A DNA stretch of 64,000 nucleotides from the NCBI GenBank assembly GCA_964234715.1, contig OZ174285.1; one strand, written 5' to 3'. Source of the DNA: Podarcis melisellensis. Lineage: Eukaryota. Under the pieces are notes generated by a model. The model did not search any database, was not told where the DNA came from, and saw only the letters and a program-made list of their open reading frames with translations. Below are positions 6,655-36,068 of the stretch, in pieces. The number at the start of each line of letters is the position of its first letter. Within the stretch, counting starts at the first letter, position 1. Both the position numbers and the translations under genes were made by a program.

Positions 6655-8811
6655 TATGACATACAGAATTGTATATTAGCATTGCAGTACCCATATAAGT
6701 AAAACATGCTTGTTCGAAAAATGGGATTTCAATGAAGAAATAAATTATTTATTTTTGGAAATAGATTTTAGGGGGACTCAATCTTGCTTCTGTTTACATG
6801 ACTGATGCAAGATCACCCACTGGTTAGAATGAAAACTGAAAGAGATCCACAGTTGTATTATATATTTCAACTGTTAAAAGAGTGCAATTAGATGTTTGAT
6901 AGTGATGAAACTGAAGTAAAAATAAAGTGAATATAAATTAGTACTGTCTCTTTCAGATACAGAGGCAGTGCATTATCTCTGTAAATAACTTTACTTATTT
7001 CAAATAAAATACCTTATATTTTAAATCACATTAATATCGGATTAAAACACAAATATAAATTTATGTATCAATGTTTTATTTTTCATTTAAATTCAACATT
7101 AAGCTTATTTAAATAGAATTCTCTTATACACACATTTTATCCAAACAAAGGTGGTCCATATGTTGCAGCAAACTGGACTGGACCCTGCACATGGAGTACT
7201 GAGCATATGGCTGATATAGTAAACTTTCTCAAAGCTGATCTCTGGTAACAGGAGTGGGGCCACTCCATTCCTCTAAAATGAGTGACCATTGTTGGTACAG
7301 TTGACAGTGTCAAGCATTTCTTAAGTAACTGGGTGTGTGCAGATGTATGCACAAAGTAATGCGCTGTTCATGGATACATGTATATTTCTGGACTAGAACC
7401 AGAAATATGGTTGACTCAAACTGCATGCTAACAACAAACAAACATAAACAAGTGAAGCAGGCAATCTATTACATGCTTACTTGGGAACTGCAAGTCCCAT
7501 TCAACACATTGGGCCTGCAGTCTAGCTTTCCCTAAACAAATTGAACCATTTACATAGATGGAGCAGGACCTTCCCTCTCCCCTCTGCAGTCCCTTGTGCA
7601 CCGAAAAAACTGCTCCTTGGTGATACAGATCAATGAAAAATGATGTGGAATGTGGGACAGGACTGACAATGGAGGGTTGTTGGTAAAAATCACATCCTCC
7701 TTTACATGAACCAAGCAGCAACTTAGGATCCAAGCCAGTAAGAGTTACTTCTGAGTAAACATGCATAAAATTGCACTATTAGTAAGATAGGGTTTATTTA
7801 GTAGTAGATAAGCAAGAGAACTACAATACTCATGGTAGCTAGTCAACAGAATTCCAACAATCCCTAAAATGGTTGTGGAGCAAACCGCGTTACAGAAATT
7901 TACTTCTACACTTACTTTCCTGTAGAGATGTTGAACCGGAAATGGTACTTTAGCTGAAATCCTATATGCATTTTCTTGGGAATAAACCCCACTGAATTCT
8001 GTGAGACTTACTTCTGAGTAGACAGTGTTAAGACTATAGATTAGACCAAATTTGCACCCCAACTCTAACTAATTTCCCAATAAGTTAGAGAACAGAAATG
8101 TTTCTAGCAGAATCAGTTTTACAATCTACATAAAAGTCCAAAATACTCAGACATTTTTTTAAAAAATGTAATAAAAGAGGAGTCTCGTGTAAGACAATAT
8201 TTTCCCATTATATTAGGCATAAAGTATAACTCTTTTACTCTCCATATTGAGAACTGTAATGATAACATTACTAAGGTTTATTTTCAGGGCAAAATTATTT
8301 GAATTTCATGAACATGACATATTTGAAACAGAGCTGACAAGCAGTCTAGAATTCTAGATGATGGATTGCTGAGAAACATAATTTTCATCTTAATAAAGCT
8401 ATGGTTTGCACATAATTTTATCCCCTTGTGCTTTCCTGCATCAAAAACCTAGACTTAAATGTAGCTTAGGGAATCTTGAGGCAAATCTATCAGTACAACT
8501 GGAACTTGCTCCTTACTAGGGAAAAAAGGTAAAGATTGTAGCTCTTTTTTGTATCCATGAGAAACGTACCCTCAAATTTCCCATAAGCAGATTCAAAATG
8601 TCTTGTGTAAATGGACCCTTGGCCATTTTAATTACAGTACAGTCAAATGTGTAGGCTCCCTAGGATTTAAATGTCTTTTTATGACGCCTGCCCTCAGCTG
8701 ATCTTATTTCTATTGTATTCAACTGCTTTCACTCATTAAATGAGCGATGCACCCTGATCAAAATAAGGCACCTTCTCTTAATATTCACATGTATAGAATG
8801 TGGATGAAAAA

Positions 8812-8950: not shown

Positions 8951-11139
8951 AATATGTATATATTTTAAGTGTAGTGGAGATAATGGGAACACAACTTTGT
9001 GTTCATGCTACTACTGATATGCTTAAAATGTTCTCTGTGTCTCTTTCCCCCCATAGGTTGGATAGGACTATAAGGGTCCGCCTTTAATAGCATTTAAATG
9101 CCTTTGAAATTGAAGATTTGTTAGTTGTGAAAACTAGCTTCATGGATTTCAGCAGGGATTAAGCACAACTAATTGTTTTAGGAATAACGAGAGCTCCCTC
9201 TGAATCTTAGATTCCAAGTGCCAGGTTAAGATCTTAAACACAATTCCATTGATTTAATTTCCATTCGGTTGGACCCAGAGACAGACAAGCGGAACTCTAC
9301 TCACACAGCAGAGCTTTCCTGGCTGCCCCACCCACCTCCTGAGTTAAGGGACCCTTTGGAATTACATTTAATGGGACACATGGGAATGAAGTGCAACTAG
9401 GAAACTGGGATAATTCAGTGAAGCTGCCCTTCACAAGCGGAGGTGTACTTTCACGTAAGTCAAGTTATCTGTGGATCCAAGCTATAAGATCTGAGACAGC
9501 CATGTAAAGGCATATTTACTTTTTTTAGGTGACAAAACATACTATATAATCTTTTTAAAGAACATATCCGAAAATAAATTCTTACAACATTCCAAATTAT
9601 TGCTGCTGTTGTTATGATTACTAAAACTACTACTACTATAACAGGTTTCCTGGGAGCTGTACGAAAACTAAATATAACGTAGATCTTGACTGCAAACTTG
9701 CAATCTAATAAAGTGCCACACATTACAAGAGATCCTTAAATATCTCATAGAGAGGGAAAGCGTTAACTCATTTCTGGTGCACAAAGACTTAGGTGAACAA
9801 TTTATGACCATAAAAATTAAGAGTCAATAGAATCTTATGCTTCCATAGATCTGTCAATGGAACTTCAGCAAACGTTTTCATCTTTGTGCTCCAAATAGTT
9901 ACAATTCCCTACCTCAATGTTGGGGGGGGGGGGCAGCAAATTGCCATCCACAGCTTTCCAGACCTTTATTTTACTAAAACCTTAAAGTCTGAAAAACTTC
10001 AATAACAAGAACATTCAAGCCTTTAAAATGTCTGCATTATATTCCAATGGAATTTAAAGTGTGGCCTCTATGCATTCCTTAAGTCTAGTCTTATTACAAT
10101 TTGATGTTAAACAGAAAGTGGAAACCTTACGCAACTAGATTAATTTTTCTCCTGGGAATAAAGACACATTAATAACTGAGATAATCTTTTCATATATATT
10201 GGAAGCGAGTGCAGTTTCACTTCTTTATTAGAAAACACATTAAGAGAAAATTATCTCATTCTCATCAATAAGCCCCAATTTATTTTTTTAAAGGGTTGCT
10301 TTCTTTGCAACAAGGTTAGGAAAGAATTGTTTTCATTAACTCGAACTGAACAAACTCTAGAAATATTATTGAATTCGGATGGAATCAATTTATGTCTTAG
10401 AAAGAACAGTGTTTACTTGCTAAACCCAGCAATATTTTTTTGCTTTAAATAAATCAGTGTTTATTGTATTTTCATAACACACAAGCAAATTCTGCATTGG
10501 TTAAAAAAATGGCCAAAAGGAAAAATTAAAGGACTCACAAGTAAAATGATTCATATTTTTGGCTTTCAAAAGAGATGATCTTTTCTGTAAGCTATAAAAA
10601 GGACTTGGCTGATTGATAAAGAACTGTATAATTTCCCAATGAACACCCATAGGTGTCAGGCCATGTCGTGAGGTAATGGAATGGTGTTTAATTTACTTCA
10701 AACTGCTGTACATTGAACTGTATGGATTACATACAAAGCAAACACTGAATGTGTGGCAGGAGCTCTAACACAGGCATGCCAAAAAATATGTCCAAAGTGT
10801 CCAACTATACATCAAATGCAATAATCCAGATGTTTGCCAAAGCAAAGCAAATAAAAGAGACCACATCTGGACTGGTGTTTAATTGTCTTTGCAATGGTCT
10901 TTCAATGTTTTTTATTCATGCTGGAAACTACTATGGGACCATTCAGAATCAGCATTTTCAGAGTGCATTTAACAGCACTATGATTAGGAAGCTAGATGCT
11001 CCTTTAGTGCGCCGATTATGTTGAACATCCTCATTCTGAGAATCTTAACAGATTTTGCTACAGAGCGGTTTGTATAGCATAAATACAACTGGGCTGTCAT
11101 TTTCTCCCCTCTGGTCTCTTCTACATGTACTGTATTGCA

Positions 11140-12020
11140 ACAATGACCCTCATTTTTAAAATATAGCCTTTGATCTATTCTGTCTCTTCATATACTCTAG
11201 AATTTCACTCCTACCATTTGCCTCCAAACCACTGCCACAAACTCCGACTGCTTCCCCTATATTTTCTCAAAATCCTCTTTAGACCCACTACAAGCAGGCT
11301 TCCATCATCTGCACTGCACTGAACTATATTCATCCTGCTTGACTACATTCCGCTGTTTCTATCCTGGTTAGCTCCCTTTATACCTTGGTGTCCACGATTC
11401 TGTTCTCATCGACTGCTTTTGCAACATCACTCATTCAGTATTTCAGCCCTGGGCACCTTTTTCCTCTTCTCTGTTGTGGGGCTTCAGGGACCTATTCTTG
11501 GCTCTTTGCTATTCTCTCTACACACAAACATCTTGTGCTTTATGCTGATGGTATCTAGTTCCATTTCTCTGACTGAGAACATTCTCTTTCCATCCAATAC
11601 ATCAACTGCCTGCCTAATATTTCTTACATTGGCATCTTAAACTTAGTACATTTAAGAACAAACTCTTCATTTTTCTTGCTCTCTACATTCATTGGCCATC
11701 TTCAAAATCCATCTTGTAAATCAGGCACAAAGCTTTGGATTTATCTTTGGTTGTCTCCTCTTCTTTGCTACATACAGTCCATTTTGAAGTCATGTGATTC
11801 TTTCTGTACCACATTGTGAAAATACAGCTGTTCCTCTTATACCCCCTTCCCCTTGGTAAACTGCCTGGCCTTTAGTACTGCAATTGTCTCTCTAATTTTG
11901 TTGTCACACCTCAGCCTTCTCTGTTTTACAAATTCAACTCTCTTAATTCAGATCCCGAGGCTCTCCTCATTTAATCGCTACAATGGCTTCCTATTTGCTT
12001 CCCTATTTGCTTCTGTACTT
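11140..12020 (+). mobile_element. Old L2-clade LINE ORF2 (RT) remnant
   Basis: Degenerate motifs in order: DPLQAGF (11282), GLQGPILGSLLFSLHT (~11479; cf. GVPQGSVLGPLLF), YADG (11541; cf. YADD), LQWLPI (~11978). Confidence 0.7.
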
Positions 12021-12028
12021 AGCACTTC

Positions 12029-12384
12029 ATAGGATGTGACATGTGTGAAGACAACCATAATCAGGAGTGTTCCCTGTGCATAGGTCTTTTCCCCTACACC
12101 AGTGGTTCCCAACCTTTTTTTGGCCATGCTCCACCTAAGCATCTCTAAAATCTTGATCCACCCCTCCCCCCCGTGACATATAATTCTTATTATTCAAAAA
12201 GTGAATTCCTATTCACGTGTAGGAAGCCTAAAAGGCTTAGCTGTTAATAACTTGGTCCCAAATTGCCCCCTTAAAAATCAATTGCCCCCCTGTGGGGGGG
12301 GGATACCCCACGTGGGGAACCATGGCCCAACACTTTCTGTCACTTAGTGAGCACCTGAGATAACTGAGTAGTTTTCAGATCAGC
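12029..12384 (+). pseudogene. Degenerate inverted partial copy of PRDM6 exon 3 (acceptor + 5' half), interrupted by a MITE
   Basis: 12029-12047 ATAGGATGTGACATGTGTG is identical to minus-strand 13772-13754; 34/41 identity to 12069. Homology resumes after the MITE (12355-12384 CTGAGATAACTGAGTAGTTTTCAGATCAGC vs exon CTGAGATTCCTGAGTGGCTTCGGGATCTGC, 22/30). Confidence 0.85.
12100..12325. mobile_element. hAT-type MITE
   Basis: TIR CAGTGGTTCCC ... GGGAACCATGG. 8-bp TSD CCCTACAC (12092-12099) / CCCAACAC (12326-12333). Confidence 0.8.
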
Positions 12385-13460
12385 AACAGCAGAAGTGGGG
12401 AACTCGGTTTAGATGGATCACCAGATCCTTCCCCACTCCTTGTGGGACAACTTAACAGGTGGGCAGATCACTGACCTGTCAATCAACAGATGGGATAATA
12501 ACATCAAGTGTTTGACACCAGTGAAAGTTCATAGGCAGTGGCTGTAACAGCCGATCAGCTGATCAATGGTTACAGCAACTTTCTTTGAAGACATGCTTTC
12601 TGCACCAGTCAACTGATTAGGGTGCTAGGTGTGTGCTTTCCAAGAGGCTCTTTAAACCACGGTTCTCCATTTCAAAAGTAATGGGGGATCTGTAGTTTTA
12701 TGTTGGTTTACTAATCAGGATAAAAACATGGTTTAAGATCCTGTGCTGCTTAATAAACCAACATTAATACACAGTTATCTGTTTGGAATGAAGCAGGAAA
12801 CTGTGGTTTTAAAAGCCCAGGAATCCAGCACCATAATCAGCATATTAGAGAGATGGGGAAGAAAGAGTTGGCCTGATTCGCAGTTTAAAGTTTACAATGC
12901 TAGAAATGTTACATTTTAAAAAGGCCCTGTAAAACCCTTTGTTATTTAAAACAGGCTTATAAACTAAGCTTCTTTCATCGAACAACAGAGGATTAGTACC
13001 TGCTTTGGCAGTTAATACATAAGCTAATAGAAAAATTGCTCTCTTTTTTCACTTTTTGAATTAGCTGCAGATGGTTCACACTATGTCAGAAGAGAAAGTA
13101 AAAAGCAGCCCAATAACAAAATAATTTGCAAAACTACAAAAATTATGACTTTTAGGATTTAAGGGATTGTTATCCCTATAATCATGTTTGGAGTCCTACA
13201 AATTTCAGCTAAACTTACTTCCAGTTGTTTTGCAGAACTAAAAACAATATTATTGTACATCTTTCTTAACATCTGTAAGAATCTGTTTTATTAAAAATAT
13301 ATATACTGGAATTTGCAGCTTCTTGCTACTAATGACATATCCAAACAGAAAAGATGTGAGCTTTTGATAGTGAAAAAAAGGTCTTTTGAAAATCTCATGA
13401 AACATATATTGAATGCATTATCAGACATTAAAAACCAAAATGCTTTGAACTGTGACTTAC

Positions 13461-13768
13461 TTCCCAGAGGTGTTGGGTGTTCCTGGTGGCTCCTGCTTGC
13501 ACCTTTTCTGGCAGAAGGAGAACTCCCTGGAAAGGCCCGATCCAGGTGCCCTGCTGAATCCTTTGAGCAGCACAGATGCCATAGGCCAAACCAGGCACAG
13601 TGCTGGTGCACAGACACACTTCCCGGGGCAGATCCCGAAGCCACTCAGGAATCTCAGGTGGAGGGGCGGCGGCAGCAGCACTACTAGTGCCCACCAGGCG
13701 GCGTAAAGAGTGCAAAGGGCCATGCATGGGGCACTCTCCATTACGATTATCTGCACACATGTCACATC
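13461..13768 (-). CDS. PRDM6: PRDM6 coding exon 3 (zinc knuckle CDMC..CPMH and start of PR/SET domain); 308 nt
   Basis: Acceptor tttgctctatAG|GA TGT GAC ATG joins the phase-1 donor to give [29 protein letters not shown]...[10 protein letters not shown]...HLWE. Donor GAA|GTAAGT at 13460-13459. 559+308=867 nt = 289 whole codons. Confidence 0.97.
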
Positions 13769-15323
13769 CTATAGAGCAAAGACAAAAAACAAAAGGGAAT
13801 TAGCTTGTCACAGTTAGGCTACTGCCATCAGATCTCATGGCCGAGATATGTGGATTAATCCACCATTTTTAAAAATAGGAACATATAAACATACTCTTGT
13901 TGTGTGTGCTCATCTTTCATATCTCAACCACCGTTATAAGACATATGTGCATAAGCAGCATCATGTTCCCAAGGTAAACCTATTTGGGACATTAGAAGGT
14001 GTACAGAAGGTTCATTCAAGCAAAGCCTGAACACATTCACATGCATTCATAGGCTTTTAAAGCTATTATTTTTAAGAGTTGGCTTAGGTTCACATTCTGG
14101 CCACTTTAAGGTACTTTTCTGTTCTGTTCAGTTGCCCACAATGACCAAGACTTCAATCTACACAGGGCCAGCCCTGCCATTAGGCAAAAGGAGGTAGATG
14201 AGTCAGGCCATGGATACCGAGTTGAAGCATCCTCTGGCCCCCTCCTGCAGTTGTTCCTCCTGATCTTCCCTCCCACTGCCATTCTCATACTTGTGGACTG
14301 GCTCTCTGGTAATGGCAATATTTTGTGCTACTTTTTACTAGTATTGTTTAAAGCACCCTATTTTACTTTGCTTCATCACTGCTCCCATATCTAACATACA
14401 TATTCTATTTCCCTTTATCCGCATAAACTGCATTATCCTGAAGTCACTTGGCTGTCCTTCAGCTTGGCAATTTCTAGCTACATTTTCTACAGGTGTCTTC
14501 AATGACATAAGCACTGTGTTTTTTATAGGCTATGTATTCATCCATTTATGTCTGAAACTTTATTTTTATCCTTTTTTAAAAAATAAATGAATTATCAGTT
14601 TAAATTAGTTAAAAATGCTTTAAATGCATTATTTTTACATGTTTTCAAACATTTGTTAGGATTTGCTACGTTTTGTTGTCTTATTATCAGCTCATGGACA
14701 GAGCAATCCTAACTGGAGCTAACAGTGGACCCACCATTCAAACGCATGCTGGACCACGACAACAAAAGTAGAAGGTTGGGGGACATTTGTTTATTTTCTT
14801 CATATTTCGCTACACCAGCTCCAGGCTGGTGTACCTGAGGGTGCTGAGGATCCAGCCCCTTGAGGGATCTCGATGACTTTGGATCCAGATCTAAACCCAC
14901 TGGTGCCCTGTCACTACTCTGAAACGTGTCTTTTCAGGGTTTTCTATCGGCTACTGCCATTGAGGAAACCACAAATTGTAGCTTTCACCTGAATGGGCAC
15001 TGCTGGTGCCTCCACCACTCCAACTGGTGCCAGTCCTGCCACCAATGAAGGCTTGTGAGAAAGCAACTCCATGCCATTCAACACATCCCCTCAGTAATCC
15101 ATATTGTGGGGGTGTTGGATTACACTGCAACCTTTCTCATAAATATTTAAATATGTTGTTGATATGGGAAGTGTTGTTGCATTTAATATGTTTGATATGT
15201 TGTTGCTCTACTCTTGTCCTGATATGACACACAGTAAACTGTCTTGATATGCCAACATTTATATTTTACTATCTGCTTCTGTTTTCATTATTTGTTTTCT
15301 TCTTGTGTATTCTATGTAAGATT

Positions 15324-15494
15324 CTATATTTTTCTGTCTATAAAACACCCCCATGTATAAGACGCCCCCTATTTTGGGGGGACTCCGATTTAAGAAAATG
15401 GGGGGGGGGAGATCTATCTGTGTATAAGACACCCCCAAATTATGGACATTATTTTTTAGGGGGGAAACCTAGTCTTATACATGGAAAAATATGA
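15324..15494. mobile_element. Tc1/mariner (pogo/Tc2-like) MITE
   Basis: Imperfect TIRs (TATTTTTCTGTCTATAA / TTATACATGGAAAAATA), internal GTATAAGAC repeats; inverted relative at 24114-24246. Confidence 0.65.
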
Positions 15495-16782
15495 TACTTT
15501 GGGCACAGTCTTCTGTGGGGAAAGGAGCGCACAAAGTAAACCGATAATGACTAATTGAAATTATCATGAAAATAAGATGTGTAGTGACTGTGGTGGGGTA
15601 CAGAAATACTAATCTCCCAAGTTTTCGCTAGCCATGATTTCACTTAAGCCTTTTAGTCAAATAATTTTCACACAATTATTTCTGAAGAAATGTTTACTCG
15701 TTTCCACAGTAAAATGTAAGTGCATGTTATGTTTATGCCAACTTTATGAATGGAAAGCTATTCATGAAACTACACCTTTGGCCCTTCATATTTCAGGGTG
15801 GGTGTCTACTAAGCTGTGTGAATCGAATGAGACCTGCTCGTGCAATGGGAGTTTCTTCCTGCACTCCCTAAACCTGTCCTGGAGGGCTCAGGGAACCCCT
15901 ATAACAGGTTTCGGGGGCACACATGGGGAGAAGAGTGAGGAACAAATCTTGTTGTACAAGCAGATTTCATTCCCCATGTGCATGCCCCACTTAAAAGCCC
16001 CTTCAATTTTAGTTCAGTATTATAATAAGTTTCTAATCTTTATTGACACCAGAAAATGTTATGTACATACAGTAACTAATGCACAGCATCCTTATGATAC
16101 ATTAAAATTTTACTATTTTTCCCCTTATATGAATAAAAAGGACTTCAGAAGTTTTCATTTTATTATGTTTCATGTTAATGGTTTCCATATTCTTTACATG
16201 AAGGTTCTGGACTTTCAAGAGAACAGTTCATGCTCAGAAATATGTTTTGCAACTAAAATAAAAATGAATCCCTTTGAATCAATTACAGTTCCTGGCACAT
16301 TTTATACATTGTAACACAATTAAAGGTTTCAGACAACTCTTTTCCAGAAATATTTTCAAAAAGTAGTACTTGTTCTACATTATTTACACAGCAATTACTT
16401 TCCCCCTGATAATTCTGCATCATACACATCCAGCAGCTAAAAATAAAACAAAAATATTCACCAGTTGGTTAGGGATTTGGTGGTCGAAACCACAAATCTG
16501 GAATAAGTAAGCAGCCTAAAACCACAGGTTATAAACCCAGCAGGACTGTCACGGCCTTCTTGCCTCCTATGTTAGATAAACTTCAATACAGTATACTGTG
16601 TAAGAATCTTTCAGAGAAGTACAAAACGTTTCTACCTATTCAATGTGATTATGAGTCACATAACTAAAATGCAGCCTCTTATTTCTGCAGCTGATAACTT
16701 ACACACGTATATTATGGCACCTAGGTGCAATTTATCACTGCTCAAGTTAATTTATCACTGTTCAAAGGCTCATAATTTATTA

Positions 16783-17151
16783 CCGTATATACTCGAGTTT
16801 AAGCCAACTTTTTCAGCACATTTTTTATGCTGAAAAAGCCCCCCTCGGCTGATACTCGAGTGAGGGTCCCACTTACTGTTTGCTGTCACCGCTCATGCCA
16901 CCGCTGCTCTGCAAGCGCGGCTCCTGTGCCTGCCCTTGCTAGCGGCAGAGGCTATTGTTGGTGGAGGAGGAGGAACGAGCAGCCCAAAAGCAGCCCTTTT
17001 GGGCTGCTCCTTCCTCCTCCTCCACCTTTGCCGCTGTCGGCATTTCCCACCCTAGGTTTATACTCAAGTCAATAAGTTTTCCTAGTTTTTTTGTGGTAAA
17101 ATTAGGTGCCTCGGCTTATATTCGGGACGGCTTATACTCGAGTATATACGG
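16783..17151. mobile_element. Tc1/mariner-type MITE, CpG-rich (young)
   Basis: Perfect TIR CCGTATATACTCGAGT / ACTCGAGTATATACGG with TA TSD. Confidence 0.9.
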
Positions 17152-17478
17152 TACATGCTTTTTTTTACAACCATCTAGATGAACAGTAAATCAGAATATA
17201 TATATTAAAATATAATTAATTTGAAGATTCCTTTAAAAATGCAAGGCTGTAAGGAATACTGTACCGCATTAAGCAGCAAAGTAAAACAGTTATCCTCCAG
17301 CTGTTAAGCACCTTTGCCAAAAAACTGATTGAAGTGCACTTCAGCGTACAAAATGGGATTTTTGACTTTTTCTTTGAACAGCCGATCTCTATACATATTA
17401 CTTTTTTAAGGTCCTAGATTTCAACAGCAGTTTGCCATGAAACACTGGATGCTAGTGTTTGAGACACGTGAACCCGAA

Positions 17479-17618
17479 GCTGGGACAGCTCAGCTAGTAG
17501 AGCACAAGACTCTTAATCTCAGGATTGTGGGCTTGAACCCCACGTTGGGCAAAGGATTCCTGAATTGCAAGGGATACACTAGATCACCCTTGTGTTCCCT
17601 TCCAACTCTACAATTCTA
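17479..17618 (+). mobile_element. tRNA-Lys(CTT)-headed SINE with CR1-like tail
   Basis: GCTGGGACAGCTCAGCTAGTAGAGCACAAGACTCTTAATCTCAGGATTGTGGGCTTGAACCCCACGTTGGGC resembles tRNA-Lys-CTT; followed by ...CCCTTCCAACTCTACAATTCTA. Confidence 0.8.
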
Positions 17619-17764
17619 GGGCACAAACAACTAGTTACCTTCCAATTCTAAGATTCTATGACATAGTTATTTAGATTCAGGAAAATCACTTGGTACTCTA
17701 TTAGGTCCACTTGGAGTGGTACATACTTACAAGTGAGTATGTTAGGGATTCCAGCTAAAAGCCA

Positions 17765-18156
17765 GGTTCAGGTGTAATATTGCTGACCCAACAAACTATG
17801 GTCAGTTGAAGAAGGAATGAGTGATGAGCTCAAGTGTTCCCTCCTTCCTTTTCATGTCCAGCTGAGGAGACTTTCTGGTTTGCGAAACAATCATTTCCCC
17901 AAGGCATCCAAACTGACAAACTCTAGTTTAAGCACTGCCTGCAACTAAAACTGTTCTGCAATCTTGGATTGCAGGCAGCGCTTAAACACAATTCCTGGTC
18001 AAGACACCCTGAGCGAACTATGATTTAACAAATCATGAAGTCACTTCTGCAGCCAGGTGTATGAAAGTGGAAGATAAAAAGAGCGTTCAGACTCATTGCT
18101 TTCCGCCCACTCTAACAAACTATAATCTGTTGGACTAGAATCATTATGTATGAACC
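17765..18156. repeat. ~390-bp imperfect palindrome (probable old MITE)
   Basis: Central arms GTTTAAGCACTGCCTGCAA / TTGCAGGCAGCGCTTAAAC (18/19 complementary); outer arms also align (CTTCCTTTTCATG..CAGCTG vs CAGCCAGG..ATGAAAGTGGAAG); ends GGTTCA / TGAACC. Confidence 0.75.
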
Positions 18157-21100
18157 AACCCACAGAGATACAGGACATTTGGCTGTGGTCAAAAGGATTA
18201 TAAATCCTATATACAATCCTATCCCATCCTCAGATGAAATACTTGAAATCACTTTAATTCTGTTGGCTTCAATGCAATTTAAGCTTACTTAAATCCTTTT
18301 ATTTGTACCCAGAAATTATTTTGGATCAGGATGATAATTCCTGTTAATACAGGCAGATATATTCCCTAGTGCTGTAGAAAACTACAGAAGCTAATGCTGA
18401 TAAAAGTGGCATTAAGGCTCCATGCATTTCTTTAATGTTTTGTGAAGAAGAGATAGGCTGTTGTCTACACTTTCTTCCTATTTCCCTCATAACTTTTTCC
18501 TTTCATTTCATAGGGTAGATATGGTTTTACAGGTGTAAAACTAAAATTTCTCACTACTGAATATTCGCATACACGTTCAAACTATGGACCATTACTTTTA
18601 TTTTGGAAGCCTATTATATAGGATGTGGTTTGGAAAATATCATATAAACACTACATATATGCATTGCTTTTGTTAAACCGTTTAAGGTATGACACAAATA
18701 TACCGTATTTGAAAAAGCACACAGACATGGAAATGTTCCAAGCAGTGCTGGTGCCAAGCTATTTTGCACCCCAGGCAAGGCTTACATCACCAAAAAAATA
18801 TTGCTAACTTCAGTTTTCAAAAACTGATGTCATGTAGAAATGATAACATTATTCAAAATATAACTTTCTGATATTTTATTTTTATATTTTGAATAATTTT
18901 ATCATTTTTACACGCCATATGTTTCTGAAAATTGAAGTTAGCCTTTTTTTGTTATATAATCTGTATAAAACTGTGTCCGCAAGGTCAGTACTGCGCTCCT
19001 CTGAGGTCTGTACTCTACTCAGCTGCCTAGTTTTCCTAATGATATCACTCGCCCTGGTTCCAAGGACAATTGTTTGCTAGTGGTATCATTACTACATGCC
19101 AGACTACAATCCTGAAATCAATTAAACCAGGATCCTTGAACCCTGGTTTAGTTCCATTACCTTCTATAAACTATACCACTTGGTTACGTCAATCCTTACA
19201 CCTCTGAAAGCAATACAATTTGCTTTTGAGTAAGTATGTGTAAGACAGAGGAGCACATGCAAAAAATTAAGTGTTTTGTGGACTGCACTGTAATTGAAAT
19301 GTGAGATGAGAAAGATGCAGCCTAGAGTGGACACCATCCTAGATAGGAAAATAGCTCAACAAAATGTTTCCCACTACAAAGAGGTGGAAATTCAAGGAAG
19401 CCTACTCCATGGGGGGGGGGGGAATGCAATTTTACAGTATTTGTTTGAAAGCATTTATGAACCACTGAATATTTTTTAGAATCTCTAATCAGTGTACAAC
19501 ATAAGATCAATAAACAATATCATTAAAACAAAAATATAACATAAAACCAGTAAAAGAACATAAAAGAACCAGTAAAAGCACATAAACAGAGTTTCAGGGA
19601 ATTCAAACAAATAAAAACAGAGCCTGGGTCAGGGAAAGCTTGGCACTATCATTTGATTTATACTAATCTTCTTTAAGCAAAATCAATAATAAACCCAATT
19701 GATTGTTCCTTATAAAGAATGAACACATGCTGGCTAGCCCCAAAACTAAACTTGCAACCATTCTCTCCCCCCCCACCCCAAAAAACCCCTCCCTCTAACC
19801 TTTCATTATAGCCTCTTTAAGATTTCTTTTACTGTATGAATCTGGGGGGGGGGGGGATCTTGTTGGAAAGTCTTAAGATTTAGGAAACGACTGATCAAGA
19901 TTTCAGTTACTTTTCAGAGCAGACCCTTGATTCTGGAATAATTTGTTCCCTGCTGACAATCTTTTAGATGTGTAACCTCCTCCCAGCTTCCTGATTATTA
20001 ATGGCTCTCTTGGAGACACCATGTCTACTGAACAGCTTCAATTAAATGAAGCCAAAGCATCTTTTTTACTCCAGCCAGGCAGCTTTAAGCTCAAACTTCT
20101 GCACTCTGCCACTAGATATGTAACATCATTCACTTTTACACATACATGAGGGTTTTAGAACCTCTGATAAAACATAAAAATATGAGATAGGCATACATGC
20201 TGGAATCAATAGCTTTTGGGGGGGGGACACTCTTTGCTCCTTTCCTGTAAAAGAAATAAAAATGAGTACTGTACTACAAAAAATTAGGGGGGTGGGATGT
20301 AGACTACATAAATGCCAATTGTTTCCCAGCTCTAAGAGTAGATTCCACCTGTGGAAACTATGCTAATAGACAAATAAACAAGTGATCTGCTTGACTTATG
20401 TAAAGAATGTGCTTGTTTTATGCATTTTCCTTATTTATACTGAAACTGCATATCCAGAAAGACTGACAACAGTTTCTGTAGCCAGAATTGCTAGCATACA
20501 TAGTCATAAAATTATTATAAATGTCTTGGCTATTTACTCTGAACACTATCTAAGCTACAAGCATTATTCATGATGTAATATAAACCCAACTTCACAATTT
20601 GCTGAATTCTACTATATTCCAAAAGGCATTCCAAGATTATCTGAGTACATAAATATATGTTTGCCTTGATTTCAGAGTAGGTCTGTAAAACTGAATTTTA
20701 CAGTATTTTTATTATGTCCCCAGTATTTAGAATGCTATTTAAACGCTGACCACAATGTTCCATTTTTTAAAAAAGCATACCATTCAAATCCTAAACTCAT
20801 TATTTGGAAGTAACTGAAACAGTTCTGCTCAAGTATTTAGGAGTCAAGCACATCTCTAAATGGGTTTATAAATAAATTTCATTCAGATTAATTGAAGACT
20901 GAATGTAAGGTGGCCCAGTCCCATTCAGTGTAAAGAAGTAGCTCCTATTGGCTTCAGTAGAATTTGCATCATACAATTCATAACATGGATACAAATTGTA
21001 TTAATTTTAGTTAACACTACTTCTAAGCAGCGTGCACTTAGAAACTAAACAGATGTACATCTAACTCCAATGCACCACTGTATAAGTCTGTTCCACTGAA

Positions 21101-28403: not shown

Positions 28404-28543
28404 NNNNNNNNNNNNNNNNNNNNNNNNNNNNNNNNNNNNNNNNNNNNNNNNNNNNNNNNNNNNNNNNNNNNNNNNNNNNNNNNNNNNNNNNNNNNNNNNN
28501 NNNNNNNNNNNNNNNNNNNNNNNNNNNNNNNNNNNNNNNNNNN
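28404..28543. other. Assembly gap (140 N)
   Basis: Run of n characters. Confidence 1.
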
Positions 28544-31500: not shown

Positions 31501-34088
31501 TGGAGTATTTTACATCAAGTACCACTGGCTTTTACAAAGCTCTTTCTCTAAGTGCTGGCGAAGGAAGCACGAATTGGCCTTTCTGAGGTCACCCTTTGTT
31601 TTACCTTTCCTGCTCTCTTGCAAGCCCTTTATCTTCTAGATTTACCGAGCTCTGTCTCTGAAAAGTAAGCCGCGTACTGTAGGCCATTAAAAGCGCGTTT
31701 CAGAGCCCATTAATTTATGAGTCTGTAATTTATGGGAGCAGATTTTCTCTCTCTCTCCGCCCGAGAAAACACGGGCTGAGTCGCCTCTGGAGGCAAACGA
31801 TGCGCTGAAATGCTCAGGTTTCCCACAGCCCATGATCGGGATCGCGAAACCTTTGCGTTTTGCGACACCGGCGCGAACCGAAAACCCACTTTGCGGTTAA
31901 AACGTCACATTTAATGTGCAAAGTTCCGGCTGCAATCCTAAACCCGCTTGCAACTGGAGGGTAAGCCCCATTGAACCCCATGGGACTCACATGTGAGGAA
32001 ACATGCATATAGGATTGCGCTGTAAGGCTGCAATCCTGTACCCGCTAGATCTTGGTAGCACCGTTTATGCTTCCTGGGGCCGAGTAAGCAGGAGGATATT
32101 GATGCAGGTCTCTGGTCCTATGAATACTTACCTGGGCTTACTTCCGAGTAAAAGTGCATAGGATCGGACGGATCCTCGCCAGATTCAAAATACATTGAAG
32201 TAAATTCAGTGCGGCTTACTGCTAAGGAACTGTGTGTTTCGTGACATTGTTTCAATTAAAAAGAACCACCCGCGTTACCGTTAGCACTGGGAAGTTTCCT
32301 CAACTCGTTGGAAAAAAATATATACAGAAACTTTCTAAGTTACATTGAAATTGCGTTTTTCCTGCTCCATGCACTGACCAGTTAAACCGGACTGTTTATG
32401 TTTAAACCGATTTCCATCCCATTTACGTCCAGCAAGGTTTAGAATGCAATTACTTCTGCTTAAACAAGTTGCGGGCTTCTTTCCCCCAGTCCTTGCAAAG
32501 TCTCTGAGCTTGCCTCTTTCAGCCCAGAGCCCATTTACTCCAAATCTCCTCGTTTTGATAGCATTTGTTGTCGTACAAATATTGTGAGGATCGGTTGTAA
32601 ATTCATCCAAGTGCAAAGATTGTTTAACCGTAGTTCGTGAAACTAGAAAAATACTTTAAAAAAACCAAACCCTTATTTCAACAGGAGAAATAGTGTTTAA
32701 AAGCTACGCATGTGCCATTGATAAGGTTGATTGCTCCTAACTATGCCAATAATAATACATAATGTTATTTAAGACAGCTGAAAAGATTTCAAGCAATTCC
32801 AAAGGCGTACAAGTAAAGGAACATGCTGTAATTGAGAAAAGGGTATTTGGTCAAATCCACACTTCAAAAAATAAACGTAACAGGGCAATCCTAGGTGTGT
32901 CTACTCAAAAGTAAGCCCTACTCCGTTTAAACTTACAGCAGGGTAAGTGTACATGGGGTTGCAGCCTAAATCTCACGAGGGGGGCTTTTCGACTCCCCGG
33001 TTTTGTTTTGTTTTAAGGTCAATGTGGCGGTCTCAGTAATTCTGAAATCCCCCATAGCATATTGGTTTTGACACCCAATTAGGCTTTTGACATTTATACT
33101 TTTGAAAACAAACTTCCTAGGGAACGAACGTGCCTTTGACGCTGAGAAGGCAAACCCAGCTGCGTTGTGCTACTGGCATGAACAAGGGCCGAAGGGGAAA
33201 GGATACAGTATTTTTAAAGGGACAAAAAAAAGTAGTTCCCTTATAAAAAGCAAAACTTTTGTTTGCTTGTTCTCAGTGTAGAAAAAAACATCTTCCACAC
33301 ATTTTAGCTTTCCATACAATAGTTAAATAAAACATATTCATTTTTTTAAAACAACAACAACCACCCTATTTTCAGCAAAGTTCTAGAAAACATTCGGTAT
33401 GCAGCCGGTCACTCTCCAGTCCTGCTATAGCGCTAAGTGCTTCAGACGACCATAAAGTCCTGCCTTGCCAATGCCCCGTTGTTGGGAGTGGGACTTATTT
33501 CGGAGTATGTGCTCTTGAGACTTTGGGGGAAGTTACAAAGTTTCCCAGCGATCATCTGGGGGCATTCTGCAACGAGGAGGCGTCTAAAGGCTGCATCTTG
33601 AAGTGTTTTATTTAGTTCCAAGTAGTAATTCTAGGAGAGTCTGCGTGTGCTGGGTGACCAATTCTGTTTGGGGTGCCCTTAATTTAGGCTGCAATCTCAC
33701 GCACGCGATATCTCTGGGACTAAGCCCCACTGCAGGGCTTAGTTTTGAGTCAAGGGCTTAATTATTTTATTCTTATTGTTCGTACCATGCCCATCTGACC
33801 GGGTTGCCCCAGCCACTCTGGGCGGCTTCCAGCACATATAAAAACATAATAAAACATTGCACATTAAAAGCTTCCCTACAGGGCTGCCTTCTAAAGGTTA
33901 TATGGTTACTCATCTCCTTGACGTAAGCGCCTTCTTCCATAAGCTCTCTTGAGTTCAGTGGCTCTCTCACTTTTGAGAGTGGGTCCTTCTTTCTCTCCCC
34001 CCCCCAATATGAAACATTTGCACCCCAAACTTTAGCCAAAGTGGCTGTGCCCTGCCGCGCGTCGGGAGGGTTGGAAGGGGGTACATAC

Positions 34089-34647
34089 GGTTGTTGGGGT
34101 CCCCGGTGTGCTGGTTGAGTGGAATGATCTCCATGCGCTGCTGCCCATACAGGTAATAGTCCAACTCCTCGGCGGTGCAGCGAAAGCGGGCCGGCGCCCT
34201 CTCGCCGCCCTTGGCCACCCCGCTGCCTCCGCCCAGGTCCTTGGTCTGCAGGAGGGCGACCGGGGCTCCCGTCGGGGAATCGGAGCTCTGAATCGGTCCA
34301 AAGACGGGGATCTGCGCCACCGGCAGCGCAGTCAAGCTGGCCAGGGAGGCGACGGCGCACGAAGACGGGGCGGACGACGGTGTGGAGGAGGAGGAGGAGG
34401 AGGAAGACGACGACGAGGAGGACAAGGAAGAGGACGAGGACGCCGCCGACGAGAGAGAGGCCGGCAGCGGGCGGAGGCTGTCAGCCTGGGTCTCGACGGC
34501 TCTCTCGGGCGCCTGGAGGTGACCTAGCAGCCCGGCGCCGCCTTTGAGCTGCTGGCTGCTGTGCGGGAACAGCTGCTGCCAGTGCTGGAGGTACGCGGGA
34601 TCCACCTTGAGGAAAGCCGATCCGCCGGGATCGCCGGGCTTCAGCAT
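34089..34647 (-). CDS. PRDM6: PRDM6 first coding exon (exon 2), N-terminal low-complexity region; 559 nt, phase-1 donor
   Basis: Translation [29 protein letters not shown]...[33 protein letters not shown] is the recognisable PRDM6 N-terminus. Donor AAC C|GTATGT at 34088-34087. Polypyrimidine tract plus CAG acceptor at 34660-34658 gives 10 nt of 5'UTR (34657-34648). Confidence 0.97.
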
Positions 34648-35212
34648 CTCTGCGAGCCTGGAGGAGAGGAAGGAGGAGAGGGAGAGGGGAGAGAAAGAGC
34701 CGTGAGAGGCGCCGTCGGGACTTTGCGCTCCGCAAGGCGTCCGGCGGTGAGGGGCTCAGAGTCTGAAGGATGCTACTCCCGACGGACTTCGACCCTCTCA
34801 GCAGCCGCTCCGCGAGGGAGAGGAGGCGCATTTGGTGCCCGCCAACGGCTCAACGTCTGCCGCGATCCTGAGTTTCGGGGGGGGGGGAGAGGAAAGCGAC
34901 CCCGGGGCACCCATTCTTGCCAGGGATCTGGCCTCCCCATTCCCAAATTGCTCCCAGGCGAGTAACATTCCGGATCGCGTTTGAACTACCCACCTCCTTC
35001 CGCCGCCCCACCCCGGACCGTCCCATCCTGCCAAGTTCTGGGGCGAGGGAAGTCCCCACGGACTTCCAGGGACCGAAGATCGCAAAACGAAACGGGAAGC
35101 GAGCAGCCAGCCAAACGCGCCAGGCCACTTTTCTCCCCAGCGTCCCGGAGAGAAGTTGGCGCGCGGCGAGGCAACTTGAGCAGAAGGCGAAGGATCCCGC
35201 CAGATCTCTTAC

Positions 35213-35650
35213 CCTGATCCCCCAGCCATCTAGCCTCCCGCCCGCCTCTCTTTTACCTGGATCTCTTTGTGGGCTACCCGGATCTGAAGGCGCGCAGGGC
35301 TCTTCTTTCCCGGAGGAGATCCAGGGTCGTGGAGGGGAAAGAAAGTGGGGGCGGTGGGGAAGGGGGGGCTGGAGAGATGATGTTCCCGAAAAGCTCCGCT
35401 CAAGCAGCCGGAGAGGCGCCCGAGCGGGGTTCGGACGGCAGGGACGTGGGAAGGCTGTCCCGCGTGGAGATCTCCAGCGTCTTCCTCGCTAGCTCTCGCC
35501 GAGGCGCTCTACGGCAGGAGCGGCGGGGCTCCGCTGCGCTCGGCGCTCTGGCAGCCTCCGGGCGAGACACGTGGGTTTTACGACAGCACTAAACACAAGC
35601 GTGTGAGGGAGGCAGGAGGGAGAGGGAGGAGAGGGAGGGGGAAAGAGCGG
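35213..35650 (-). other. PRDM6: Candidate non-coding first exon (5'UTR) of PRDM6; TSS approximate
   Basis: The coding exon has a strong acceptor, so an upstream exon is required. Donor-like sites AGG|GTAAGA (GT 35212-35211) and CAG|GTAAAA (GT 35256-35255) lie inside the CpG island. The 5' end is inferred, not observed. Confidence 0.5.
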
Positions 35651-35879
35651 CGGATCGGAGCGCTGCTTAAACTCGCAACAAAACCCCCACCCTCCCCGCC
35701 GCGCGCAACCTCGCGTAGGTTAAGTTCAGAGCAGCCTGATTCTTGAACAGGGCGAGAAGGCTGCTGCTGCTGCTCCCGTCGTTTGCCAGACGGCTGGAGG
35801 GAAGGGAGGGAATCTGCCTTAGGGGCAGGGTTGGGGGTCATTGGTAGACCTCTGGGTTCCGGAAGAGGGTGAAGCGTCC

Positions 35880-36068
35880 CCAGGAGCCAACTGCTAGGGG
35901 TCGAGGTCCCTTCGCCCCCCAATAAATATTTGAGGGGCGTGGTCCGTCGTCGTCCCCCCAGTGGATGGCCAGGGTCCATTCAAATGGTGTGCCGTGTCTT
36001 GTGATCGATTATGTGGGGCGCGACTTACTTGCCCCTCCCTCCGTATTCGATTCAAGTTGGCACCCCTG
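35880..36068. mobile_element. GC-rich hAT-like MITE in proximal promoter
   Basis: Termini CAGGAGCCAACT / AGTTGGCACCCCTG are complementary; homologous to 27472-27651. Confidence 0.6.

Follow-up and report, generated by a model that had tools for sequence, protein, structure and literature searches.

In a window of 64,000 nucleotides from Podarcis melisellensis (contig OZ174285.1), intron 3 of PRDM6, a gene read from the minus strand, carries on the opposite strand a copy of the beginning of the exon just upstream. The question is whether this arm, which would be antisense to an acceptor within the same pre-mRNA, has been kept as a regulatory element, as a sequence-only reading of the locus had proposed, or is the relic of an inverted duplication that is decaying neutrally.

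The exon in question is preceded by an AG at 13770–13769 and followed by a GTAAGT donor starting at 13460 (GT at 13460–13459), and it contains an internal in-frame ATG at 13760 (Table 1). Its orthology to PRDM6 is evident from relatives that are 96–99% identical, several of them named PRDM6; Pfam hits on an exon-3-sized piece are weak and below threshold (PRDM2_PR at E 0.01, SET at E 0.078). All searches for relatives used exon 3 alone as query and not a joined multi-exon model. Exon 4 lies outside the window, and a run of N is present at 28404–28543.

Table 1. Features of the PRDM6 exon 3 region and of the inverted copy in intron 3, in window coordinates.
Feature	Position	Strand	Description	Basis
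PRDM6 exon 3	13461..13768	-	308 nt, phase-1 start, zinc-knuckle codons, start of PR/SET domain	translation
Duplication source	13617..13799	-	intron 2 end with polypyrimidine tract and AG (13770-13769), followed by about 150 nt of exon 3	
Copy block 1	11999..12099	+	AG with some 30 nt of polypyrimidine tract before it and about 70 nt of exon 3 start after it; antisense arm in the minus-strand pre-mRNA	BLAST, alignments
Perfect 19-nt core	12029..12047	+	ATAG and first 15 exon nt; partner 13772-13754, minus strand	
hAT-like MITE splitting the copy	12100..12325	.		TSD 12092-12099 / 12326-12333, terminal inverted repeats, copy number
Copy block 2	12334..12397	+	matches exon 3 from ~13705 to 13617, minus 29 nt	repeat search, alignments
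Intron 3 segment, donor to arm	12398..13460	-	would be looped out by the predicted helix along with what remains of exon 3 (13616-13461)	

The inverted copy of the exon 3 start is real. Plus-strand positions 11999–12099 and 12334–12397 together correspond to minus-strand 13799–13617 at an identity of about 78%. In line with the earlier reading, an ungapped comparison of 12029–12069 with the reverse complement of 13732–13772 gives 34 of 41 matches, the first 19 being identical and spanning the AG of the acceptor as well as the in-frame ATG, and four of the seven mismatches would be G·U pairs in minus-strand RNA. A repeat search returned two pairs of inverted arms, 12029–12076 with 13725–13772 (48 nt, 79% complementary) and 12352–12384 with 13628–13660 (33 nt, 76%), and BLAST with this region as query and the whole window as target yielded 11999–12089 versus 13799–13714 as the sole match (74.7% over 91 columns, E 6.6e-8). 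With the inserted transposon removed, the gapped local alignment of copy and source scores 111.5 against 27.9 ± 4.6 for shuffled sequences (maximum 43), that is, 18 SD above them. The copy continues beyond the transposon into a second block, as had been stated, and its ends lie at 11999 and about 12397. The intronic AG is part of the copy, and homology extends about 30 nt upstream of it into the polypyrimidine tract, further than had been described. Relative to the exon, the copy bears a 2-nt insertion and the 29-nt deletion already noted, the latter appearing as a single gap in a MAFFT alignment with eight orthologous exons. No homology was found past either end, only chance-level words being shared by 12398–13250 with the remainder of exon 3 and by 11000–12030 with intron 2 upstream of 13800. 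Protein-style searches with the ORFs over the arm and over a conserved block near it gave no match, and an Rfam scan of 9000–17000 gave no credible family.

The interruption of the copy, previously attributed to a hAT MITE, has the expected features. It is flanked by an 8-bp target-site duplication (CCCTACAC at 12092–12099 and CCCAACAC at 12326–12333, 7/8 identical), its ends form terminal inverted repeats with 11 of the first 15 nt matching, and its body of 226 nt is short and non-coding, so that element and duplication together amount to a 234-nt insertion in the middle of the helix discussed below. In two related species, its summed contig depth reaches 12,000–18,000 compared with 12–15 in the flanks, an excess of about 1,000-fold, and 41–47 contigs break off exactly at 12100. 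By target-site duplication, terminal repeats, size and abundance, the element is a high-copy, hAT-like MITE; its placement in hAT and not in another group with 8-bp target-site duplications we take from the likeness to hAT-Charlie termini.

In the PRDM6 pre-mRNA, the copy forms an antisense arm 1.06–1.46 kb downstream of the exon 3 donor, close to the distance originally given. Folding predicts a block 1 duplex of –93.6 kcal/mol (shuffles –31.5 ± 5), with a helix of about 75 bp around the perfect 19-bp core, which exceeds in silico the dsRNA length of about 20 bp that serves as a criterion for editing-complementary sequences (ECSs). In a 1.9-kb fold, the long-range pairs are present in the MFE structure, core pair probabilities are 0.92–1.0 and scrambling of the arm costs 44 kcal/mol. 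With the arm, the unpaired probability drops from 0.50 to 0.15 in the polypyrimidine tract and from 0.40 to 0.05 in the first 20 exon nucleotides, so that tract and AG are predicted to be sequestered whenever the arm pairs. The duplex of the minus-strand transcript is 11 kcal/mol more stable than its plus-strand equivalent. In silico, the structural half of the proposal stands: at equilibrium, the arm is predicted to pair over polypyrimidine tract, AG and exon start. The functional half, in which it would serve as an ADAR ECS, a splice mask or a dosage switch, finds no support in the wobble, conservation and decay tests described in the following.

Differences between copy and exon were polarised with the orthologous exons of other species as reference. 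Thirty of the 36 polarised differences fall on the copy, two, both synonymous, on the exon, and four are ambiguous. Among the copy-side changes, 10 keep a G·U pair, 9 give A·C and 11 are transversions, pairing being disrupted by 20 of the 30. Since G·U-keeping and A·C changes are nearly balanced, there is no wobble bias; the excess suggested by the four out of seven mismatches in the first block was already insignificant overall in another, unpolarised alignment (9 versus 5, p = 0.21) and was rejected on the copy-side counts. Compensatory changes between arm and exon were likewise not seen in the polarised alignment. Substitutions are spread evenly over codon positions (8:10:9), and all seven CpGs of the source stretch are lost from the copy. 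Frame loss, even codon positions, CpG depletion and a tolerated MITE insertion are together what neutral decay should leave. The length of the 19-nt run is marginally unusual (permutation P 0.03–0.09 with indels collapsed), a value before correction for ascertainment, since it was such a run that made the repeat visible.

With exon 3 ORF fragments, contigs were retrieved for 11 other samples; the ortholog sampling left out proteins bearing ELPEWL and LLPPEK, residues of mammalian type. Two close relatives (organisms D and E) carry the arm. In organism D, whose differences were fully listed, the arm blocks show 2 substitutions compared with 2.3 expected from 36 in 2,659 flanking intron nucleotides, while in organism E the block 1 contig differs by 2.7% versus about 2.2% elsewhere; the power of this test is low because the relatives differ by only 1.4–2.5%. 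Divergence at the neutral intronic rate, which the sequence-only reading itself had named as speaking against a function, is what organism D displays. In a bird-like species, the 4 kb downstream of the exon yielded no inverted copy, and none turned up in five other loci. Comparison of the window with the bird-like locus shows conserved blocks at 9986–10856 and 8232–8504, the arm not being among them. The five closest loci among more distant species have exons of 85–88% nucleotide identity and unalignable introns, and they end 73–958 nt past the donor, before the expected arm site. At acceptor position –3, exon and copy share a T where all nine other species have C, which fits a duplication after the split from the lineages of these species. 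Neither conservation of the arm outside close relatives nor the pair-preserving or compensatory changes by which ECSs and PCCRs (conserved long-range complementary regions that mask splice sites or loop out exons) are recognised were observed, albeit with limited power.

The copy is thus probably a lineage-specific, old and neutrally decaying relic, its duplex capacity being a by-product and not a selected function; the substitution, CpG, indel and close-relative tests favour the null model that accompanied the original proposal. Counted against this reading are the very strong predicted duplex and the position of the longest perfect stretch exactly on AG and ATG. In the lineage of P. melisellensis, a segment that starts about 32 nt ahead of the acceptor and reaches some 150 nt into exon 3 would have been duplicated and inserted in inverted orientation into intron 3, 1.1–1.5 kb downstream, presumably by replication template switching or fold-back repair synthesis. 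This event is probably old, and the copy would since have decayed like ordinary non-coding, methylated DNA, leaving a record of about 23% substitutions nearly all on its own side, vanished CpGs, a 2-nt gain, a 29-nt loss and a split by the MITE. The pair is still recognisable because protein constraint holds the exon side fixed, and the transcript therefore keeps the capacity for a thermodynamically strong exon–intron duplex. Should this duplex form in vivo, an effect on splicing or promiscuous A-to-I editing would presumably be tolerated.

A regulatory duplex is possible but unsupported. That the arm is a selected element, masking the acceptor so that exon 3 is skipped and dosage lowered, or recruiting ADAR to edit the acceptor or the zinc-knuckle codons, is unlikely, although several points are in its favour. 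The long-range helix is strongly predicted and would sequester polypyrimidine tract and AG, its perfect core sits on AG and internal ATG with a marginally unusual run length, the arm is retained across three related organisms, and long-range complementary regions are known to block splice sites and to attract editing (PMC8052449; PMC3479170). Skipping of exon 3 would shift the frame, as had been pointed out, because 308 mod 3 = 2, and PR-minus PRDM6 isoforms exist in mouse (PMC4009873). Against a selected element stand the lack of wobble or compensatory bias, with two thirds of the arm-side changes breaking pairs, the loss of all copy CpGs, the indels and the 234-nt insertion tolerated within the helix, the missing excess of conservation in close relatives and the absence of the copy from the other species' contigs examined. 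Moreover, the acceptor is transcribed about 1.7 kb ahead of the arm, so that splicing factors could bind first. An effect in vivo is nevertheless plausible because of the strength of the duplex and because human complementary regions with energies under –30 kcal/mol show a strong enrichment in A-to-I sites (PMC8052449). In two runs, presumed to be RNA of a related organism, contig depth is 0 over 13406–13906, in contigs that also drop rare variants, and the small share of words that these runs contributed stemmed from the MITE and one other repeat rather than from exon 3. Slightly more doubtful still is the specific idea that the exon's acceptor self-duplicate has been co-opted as a PRDM6 pre-mRNA switch, by which the acceptor would be masked or the UAG adenosine edited, the exon skipped and the dosage reduced; if true, the locus would present such an element, editing-complementary or splice-masking, shortly after its origin by exon self-duplication.

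It is quite improbable that the relic is neutral but has its core identity maintained by occasional short-tract gene conversion between the arms. The core is identical at 19 of 19 positions compared with about 78% overall, and the derived T at –3 shared by exon and copy lies within it; however, this T is equally explained by a duplication later than the substitution, the length of the run does not go beyond chance expectation, and the homology near the core probably lacks the length and similarity that efficient conversion needs. Chance similarity or an assembly artefact, to which at most the low complexity of the polypyrimidine part could point, is practically negligible given the match statistics above and independent contigs from two other organisms that span the arm and the MITE junction.

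As the evidence favours an ordinary duplication in decay, the importance of the locus is modest. Were the duplex without effect, an acceptor that is essential and deeply conserved would be tolerating an arm of about –90 kcal/mol located 1.7 kb downstream, which would bound how far thermodynamic long-range pairing predicts in vivo behaviour; were it to have one, the locus would show how a single inverted self-duplication at the edge of an exon can create a regulatory arm complementary to that exon.

Like the ADAR ECSs of GRIA2 (Q/R and R/G sites) and the intronic element of Gabra3 (PMC3479170), the arm is intronic, downstream and complementary to the exon, and, as there, the dsRNA, predicted here to exceed 20 bp with a perfect 19-bp core, could form only before splicing. 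Known ECSs, however, are conserved along with an observed editing site, whereas the PRDM6 arm is evidently an exon duplicate and no conserved element, decays at the flanking rate and has had most of its substitutions break pairs. A literature search for an origin of ECSs by inverted duplication yielded no direct precedent. With arms of one gene about 1.65 kb apart, the pair also falls within the ranges set for PCCRs (<10 kb, ≤ –15 kcal/mol), with an energy well past the –30 kcal/mol class (Kalmykova et al., 2021; PMC8052449), and, as in splice-masking PCCRs, the predicted helix overlaps a 3' splice site in a geometry that would obstruct the acceptor. PCCRs, though, are defined by conservation of both arms, while the PRDM6 arm is conserved only in close relatives and without compensatory change, and in the human catalogue active splice sites are depleted of such regions (PMC8052449). 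The origin model for plant MIRNA genes (for example bioRxiv 10.1101/682591) likewise starts from the inverted duplication of a gene fragment, giving a transcript hairpin complementary to that gene; those hairpins, in contrast, are separately transcribed and processed into small RNAs, whereas the PRDM6 arms share one vertebrate pre-mRNA. Intronic pairs of inverted SINE or Alu elements form dsRNA, undergo promiscuous editing and can promote back-splicing. The PRDM6 arms resemble them as inverted repeats 1–2 kb apart whose dsRNA would be a passive, historical by-product, but one arm is a functional exon with its acceptor and not a second transposon copy. Lying on this acceptor, the upstream arm would hinder back-splicing, and a promotion of circRNA formation by the arms was for this reason judged unlikely.

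An inverted copy of the start of PRDM6 exon 3, together with its acceptor, is present in intron 3, as the sequence-only reading had correctly observed, and exceeds what chance would give. A repeat search recovered inverted arms (12029-12076 / 13725-13772 and 12352-12384 / 13628-13660), and BLAST against the whole window returned a single pair, 11999-12089 versus 13799-13714, at 74.7% identity (E 6.6e-8). With the insert taken out, gapped alignment scores 111.5 versus 27.9 ± 4.6 in shuffles. The 41-mer highlighted earlier is identical at 34 positions, including all of the initial 19 nt, four of the seven mismatches would be G·U in the minus-strand RNA, and the deletion postulated in the copy reappears as one 29-nt gap when aligning it with eight orthologous exons (MAFFT). 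Homology extends further than first described, reaching about 30 nt of polypyrimidine tract 5' of the AG, and none is detectable past 11999 or about 12397. The outer edge of the copy coincides exactly with 2.4 repeats of the 12-nt unit GCTTCCCTATTT (11986-12013), which may have arisen afterwards by tandem duplication of the copy's initial bases.

Coordinates of the inverted copy, its source exon and neighboring features (plus-strand numbering)
Feature	Coordinates	Strand	Remarks
Copy, block 1	11999-12099		inverted in intron 3
MITE insert in copy	12100-12325		flanked by CCCTACAC / CCCAACAC; terminal inverted repeats
Copy, block 2	12334-12397		inverted in intron 3
Identical core	12029-12047 / 13772-13754		19 nt, over acceptor AG and in-frame ATG
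PRDM6 exon 3	13768..13461	minus	308 nt; phase-1 start; AG 13770-13769; donor GTAAGT from 13460
In-frame ATG in exon 3	13760	minus
First PRDM6 coding exon	33967-34647	minus	MLKPGDPGG..., long serine run; initiator ATG at ~34647
Intron-3 block	9986-10856		74% over 894 nt to L005 8008-8883
Intron-3 block	8232-8504		80% over 277 nt to L005 9530-9804
Intron-2 blocks	16050-16615, 15617-15770, 18223-18288		67-78% to L010, L011, L012

Used as a query on its own, the peptide encoded by the 102 full codons of exon 3 shares 96-99% identity with amniote protein fragments, several of them named PRDM6 at source, and Pfam gives weak matches to the start of the PR/SET domain, as expected for a query of only exon size. 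The following exon is outside the window. Since 308 mod 3 is 2, skipping of exon 3 would shift the frame. In mouse, a PR-minus isoform of Prdm6 without exons 3-5 has been reported (PMC4009873); splicing variation at this place is thus possible in mammals, which is uninformative on the arm. The first coding exon, upstream of exon 3, lies inside a stretch of 65% G+C (34000-36000) that is probably a CpG island.

From its flanking repeats, terminal inverted repeats and a summed contig depth about 1,000 times that of the flanks in two related genomes, the insert is a MITE, high in copy number and bordered by an 8-bp target duplication; dozens of contigs from two related genomes part company exactly at 12100. 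Presumably it belongs to the hAT group, judging from the 8-bp duplication and a resemblance to hAT-Charlie termini. A second very high-copy repeat begins at about 15326 (15326-15400 and beyond), showing a summed depth of 14,000-20,000 in two related genomes and numerous contig breaks at 15326/15327.

Transcribed as part of the PRDM6 pre-mRNA, the copy reads as antisense, 1,064-1,462 nt 3' of the exon-3 donor, and the proposed exon-intron duplex over the acceptor is thermodynamically supported as a predicted capacity. In equilibrium calculations, which describe capacity and not occurrence in the cell, RNAduplex yields -93.6 kcal/mol for block 1, compared to -31.5 ± 5.0 for shuffled arms, and -58.1 kcal/mol for block 2, while the long-range helix is within the minimum-energy structure of the whole 1.9-kb stretch, with the 19 core pairs at probabilities of 0.92-1.0. 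By the same equilibrium measure of capacity, the mean probability of being unpaired falls, once the arm is included, from 0.50 to 0.15 in the polypyrimidine tract and from 0.40 to 0.05 in the first 20 exon nt; with the arm scrambled, both values return at a cost of 44 kcal/mol. In the predicted 1.9-kb fold, the C-rich MITE segment 12123-12164 (G-rich in the minus-strand transcript) additionally pairs with 13625-13667 of the exon, a CCGCC/CCTCCACC stretch, lengthening the modeled helix through chance complementarity. For comparison, human conserved complementary regions have a median of 13 nt and -17 kcal/mol, those below -30 kcal/mol being strongly enriched in A-to-I sites, and are depleted over active splice sites (PMC8052449).

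Nevertheless, a selected function of the arm in splicing or editing appears unlikely. The copy is alike in kind to editing-complementary sequences and to splice-masking long-range structures, but it lacks the conservation that characterizes both. When assigning each exon/copy difference to the changed side via orthologous exon-3 sequences from contigs of other species, mammalian-type hits with ELPEWL and LLPPEK excepted, 30 fall on the copy side, two on the exon side (both synonymous) and four are ambiguous. Two thirds of the copy-side changes break pairs: 10 keep G·U, 9 lead to A·C and 11 are transversions. The suggested wobble bias disappears after polarization (10 versus 9 on the copy side; overall 9 versus 5 in an alternative alignment, p = 0.21), and although the minus-strand duplex is 11 kcal/mol stabler than its plus-strand equivalent, the polarized counts do not support a directional bias. 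Substitutions are distributed 8:10:9 over codon positions, the seven CpGs of the source stretch are reduced to zero in the copy, and the copy has in addition gained 2 nt and the MITE and lost 29 nt. By permutation, counting each indel as one event, the probability of the 19-nt perfect run is 0.03-0.09, and this value precedes correction for ascertainment, as such a run is what makes old repeats visible to readers. That conversion holds the core identical is even less credible than a selected function.

Most likely, the copy is a neutral relic of an old inverted duplication, specific to this lineage, of part of the exon edge; were the exon side not frozen, it would no longer be recognizable. 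Every evolutionary test run agrees with the neutral decaying duplication that the sequence-only reading had itself set as null model. Compared to loci L010-L016, exon 3 carries only 2-4 synonymous changes of this lineage's own over its initial 150 nt (13617-13768), versus about 30 changes in the copy; either constraint on synonymous sites is unusually strong in this exon or decay of the CpG-rich copy was rapid.

Among sequencing runs, five related organisms hold the stretch. Contigs of two of these close relatives, D and E, cross the arm as well as the point where it meets the MITE; arm and MITE insertion are thus older than the divergence of these organisms. In organism D, 36 of 2,659 sites in the flanking intron depart from the window; 11958-12120 has zero substitutions and block 2 has two (12336 and 12390), with one more at 12401. 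Excess conservation of the arm is not seen in D (2 substitutions versus 2.3 expected over both blocks), nor does the block-1 contig of E (2.7% different versus about 2.2% elsewhere) point to it, in a test of low power because these relatives have diverged by just 1.4-2.5%.

In more distant species, an inverted copy of the exon start was found neither within 4 kb downstream or upstream in the bird-like locus (L005-L007) nor in L001-L003, L008 and L009. A 19-22 nt match in L002/L003 (score 29 versus a shuffle maximum of 26) was taken for chance. The age of the arm is only loosely bounded because the five closest loci (exon 85-88% identical in nucleotides, introns unalignable) stop short of its expected site. 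Acceptor position -3 is T in both exon and copy and C in all nine other species, which fits a duplication that took place once those lineages had split off. At about 23%, divergence on the copy side would amount to roughly 25-fold that per lineage among the close relatives.

Within a 5-kb stretch, two presumed-RNA runs gave contigs at repeats, at 11863-12086 (one, low-depth) and at 14408-14741, and none over exon 3. These two intervals are the sole non-repeat places with such contigs (depth 2-12), one overlapping block 1 of the arm; they may stem from unspliced pre-mRNA, from carried-over DNA or from a transcript not yet annotated. Elsewhere in intron 3, two blocks align to the bird-like PRDM6 locus L005 and the remainder is unalignable to it; the alignment probably marks them as non-coding elements of deep conservation, possibly enhancers. 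The intron-2 blocks, apart from which the introns of the closer relatives are unalignable, suggest another such conserved element upstream of exon 3.
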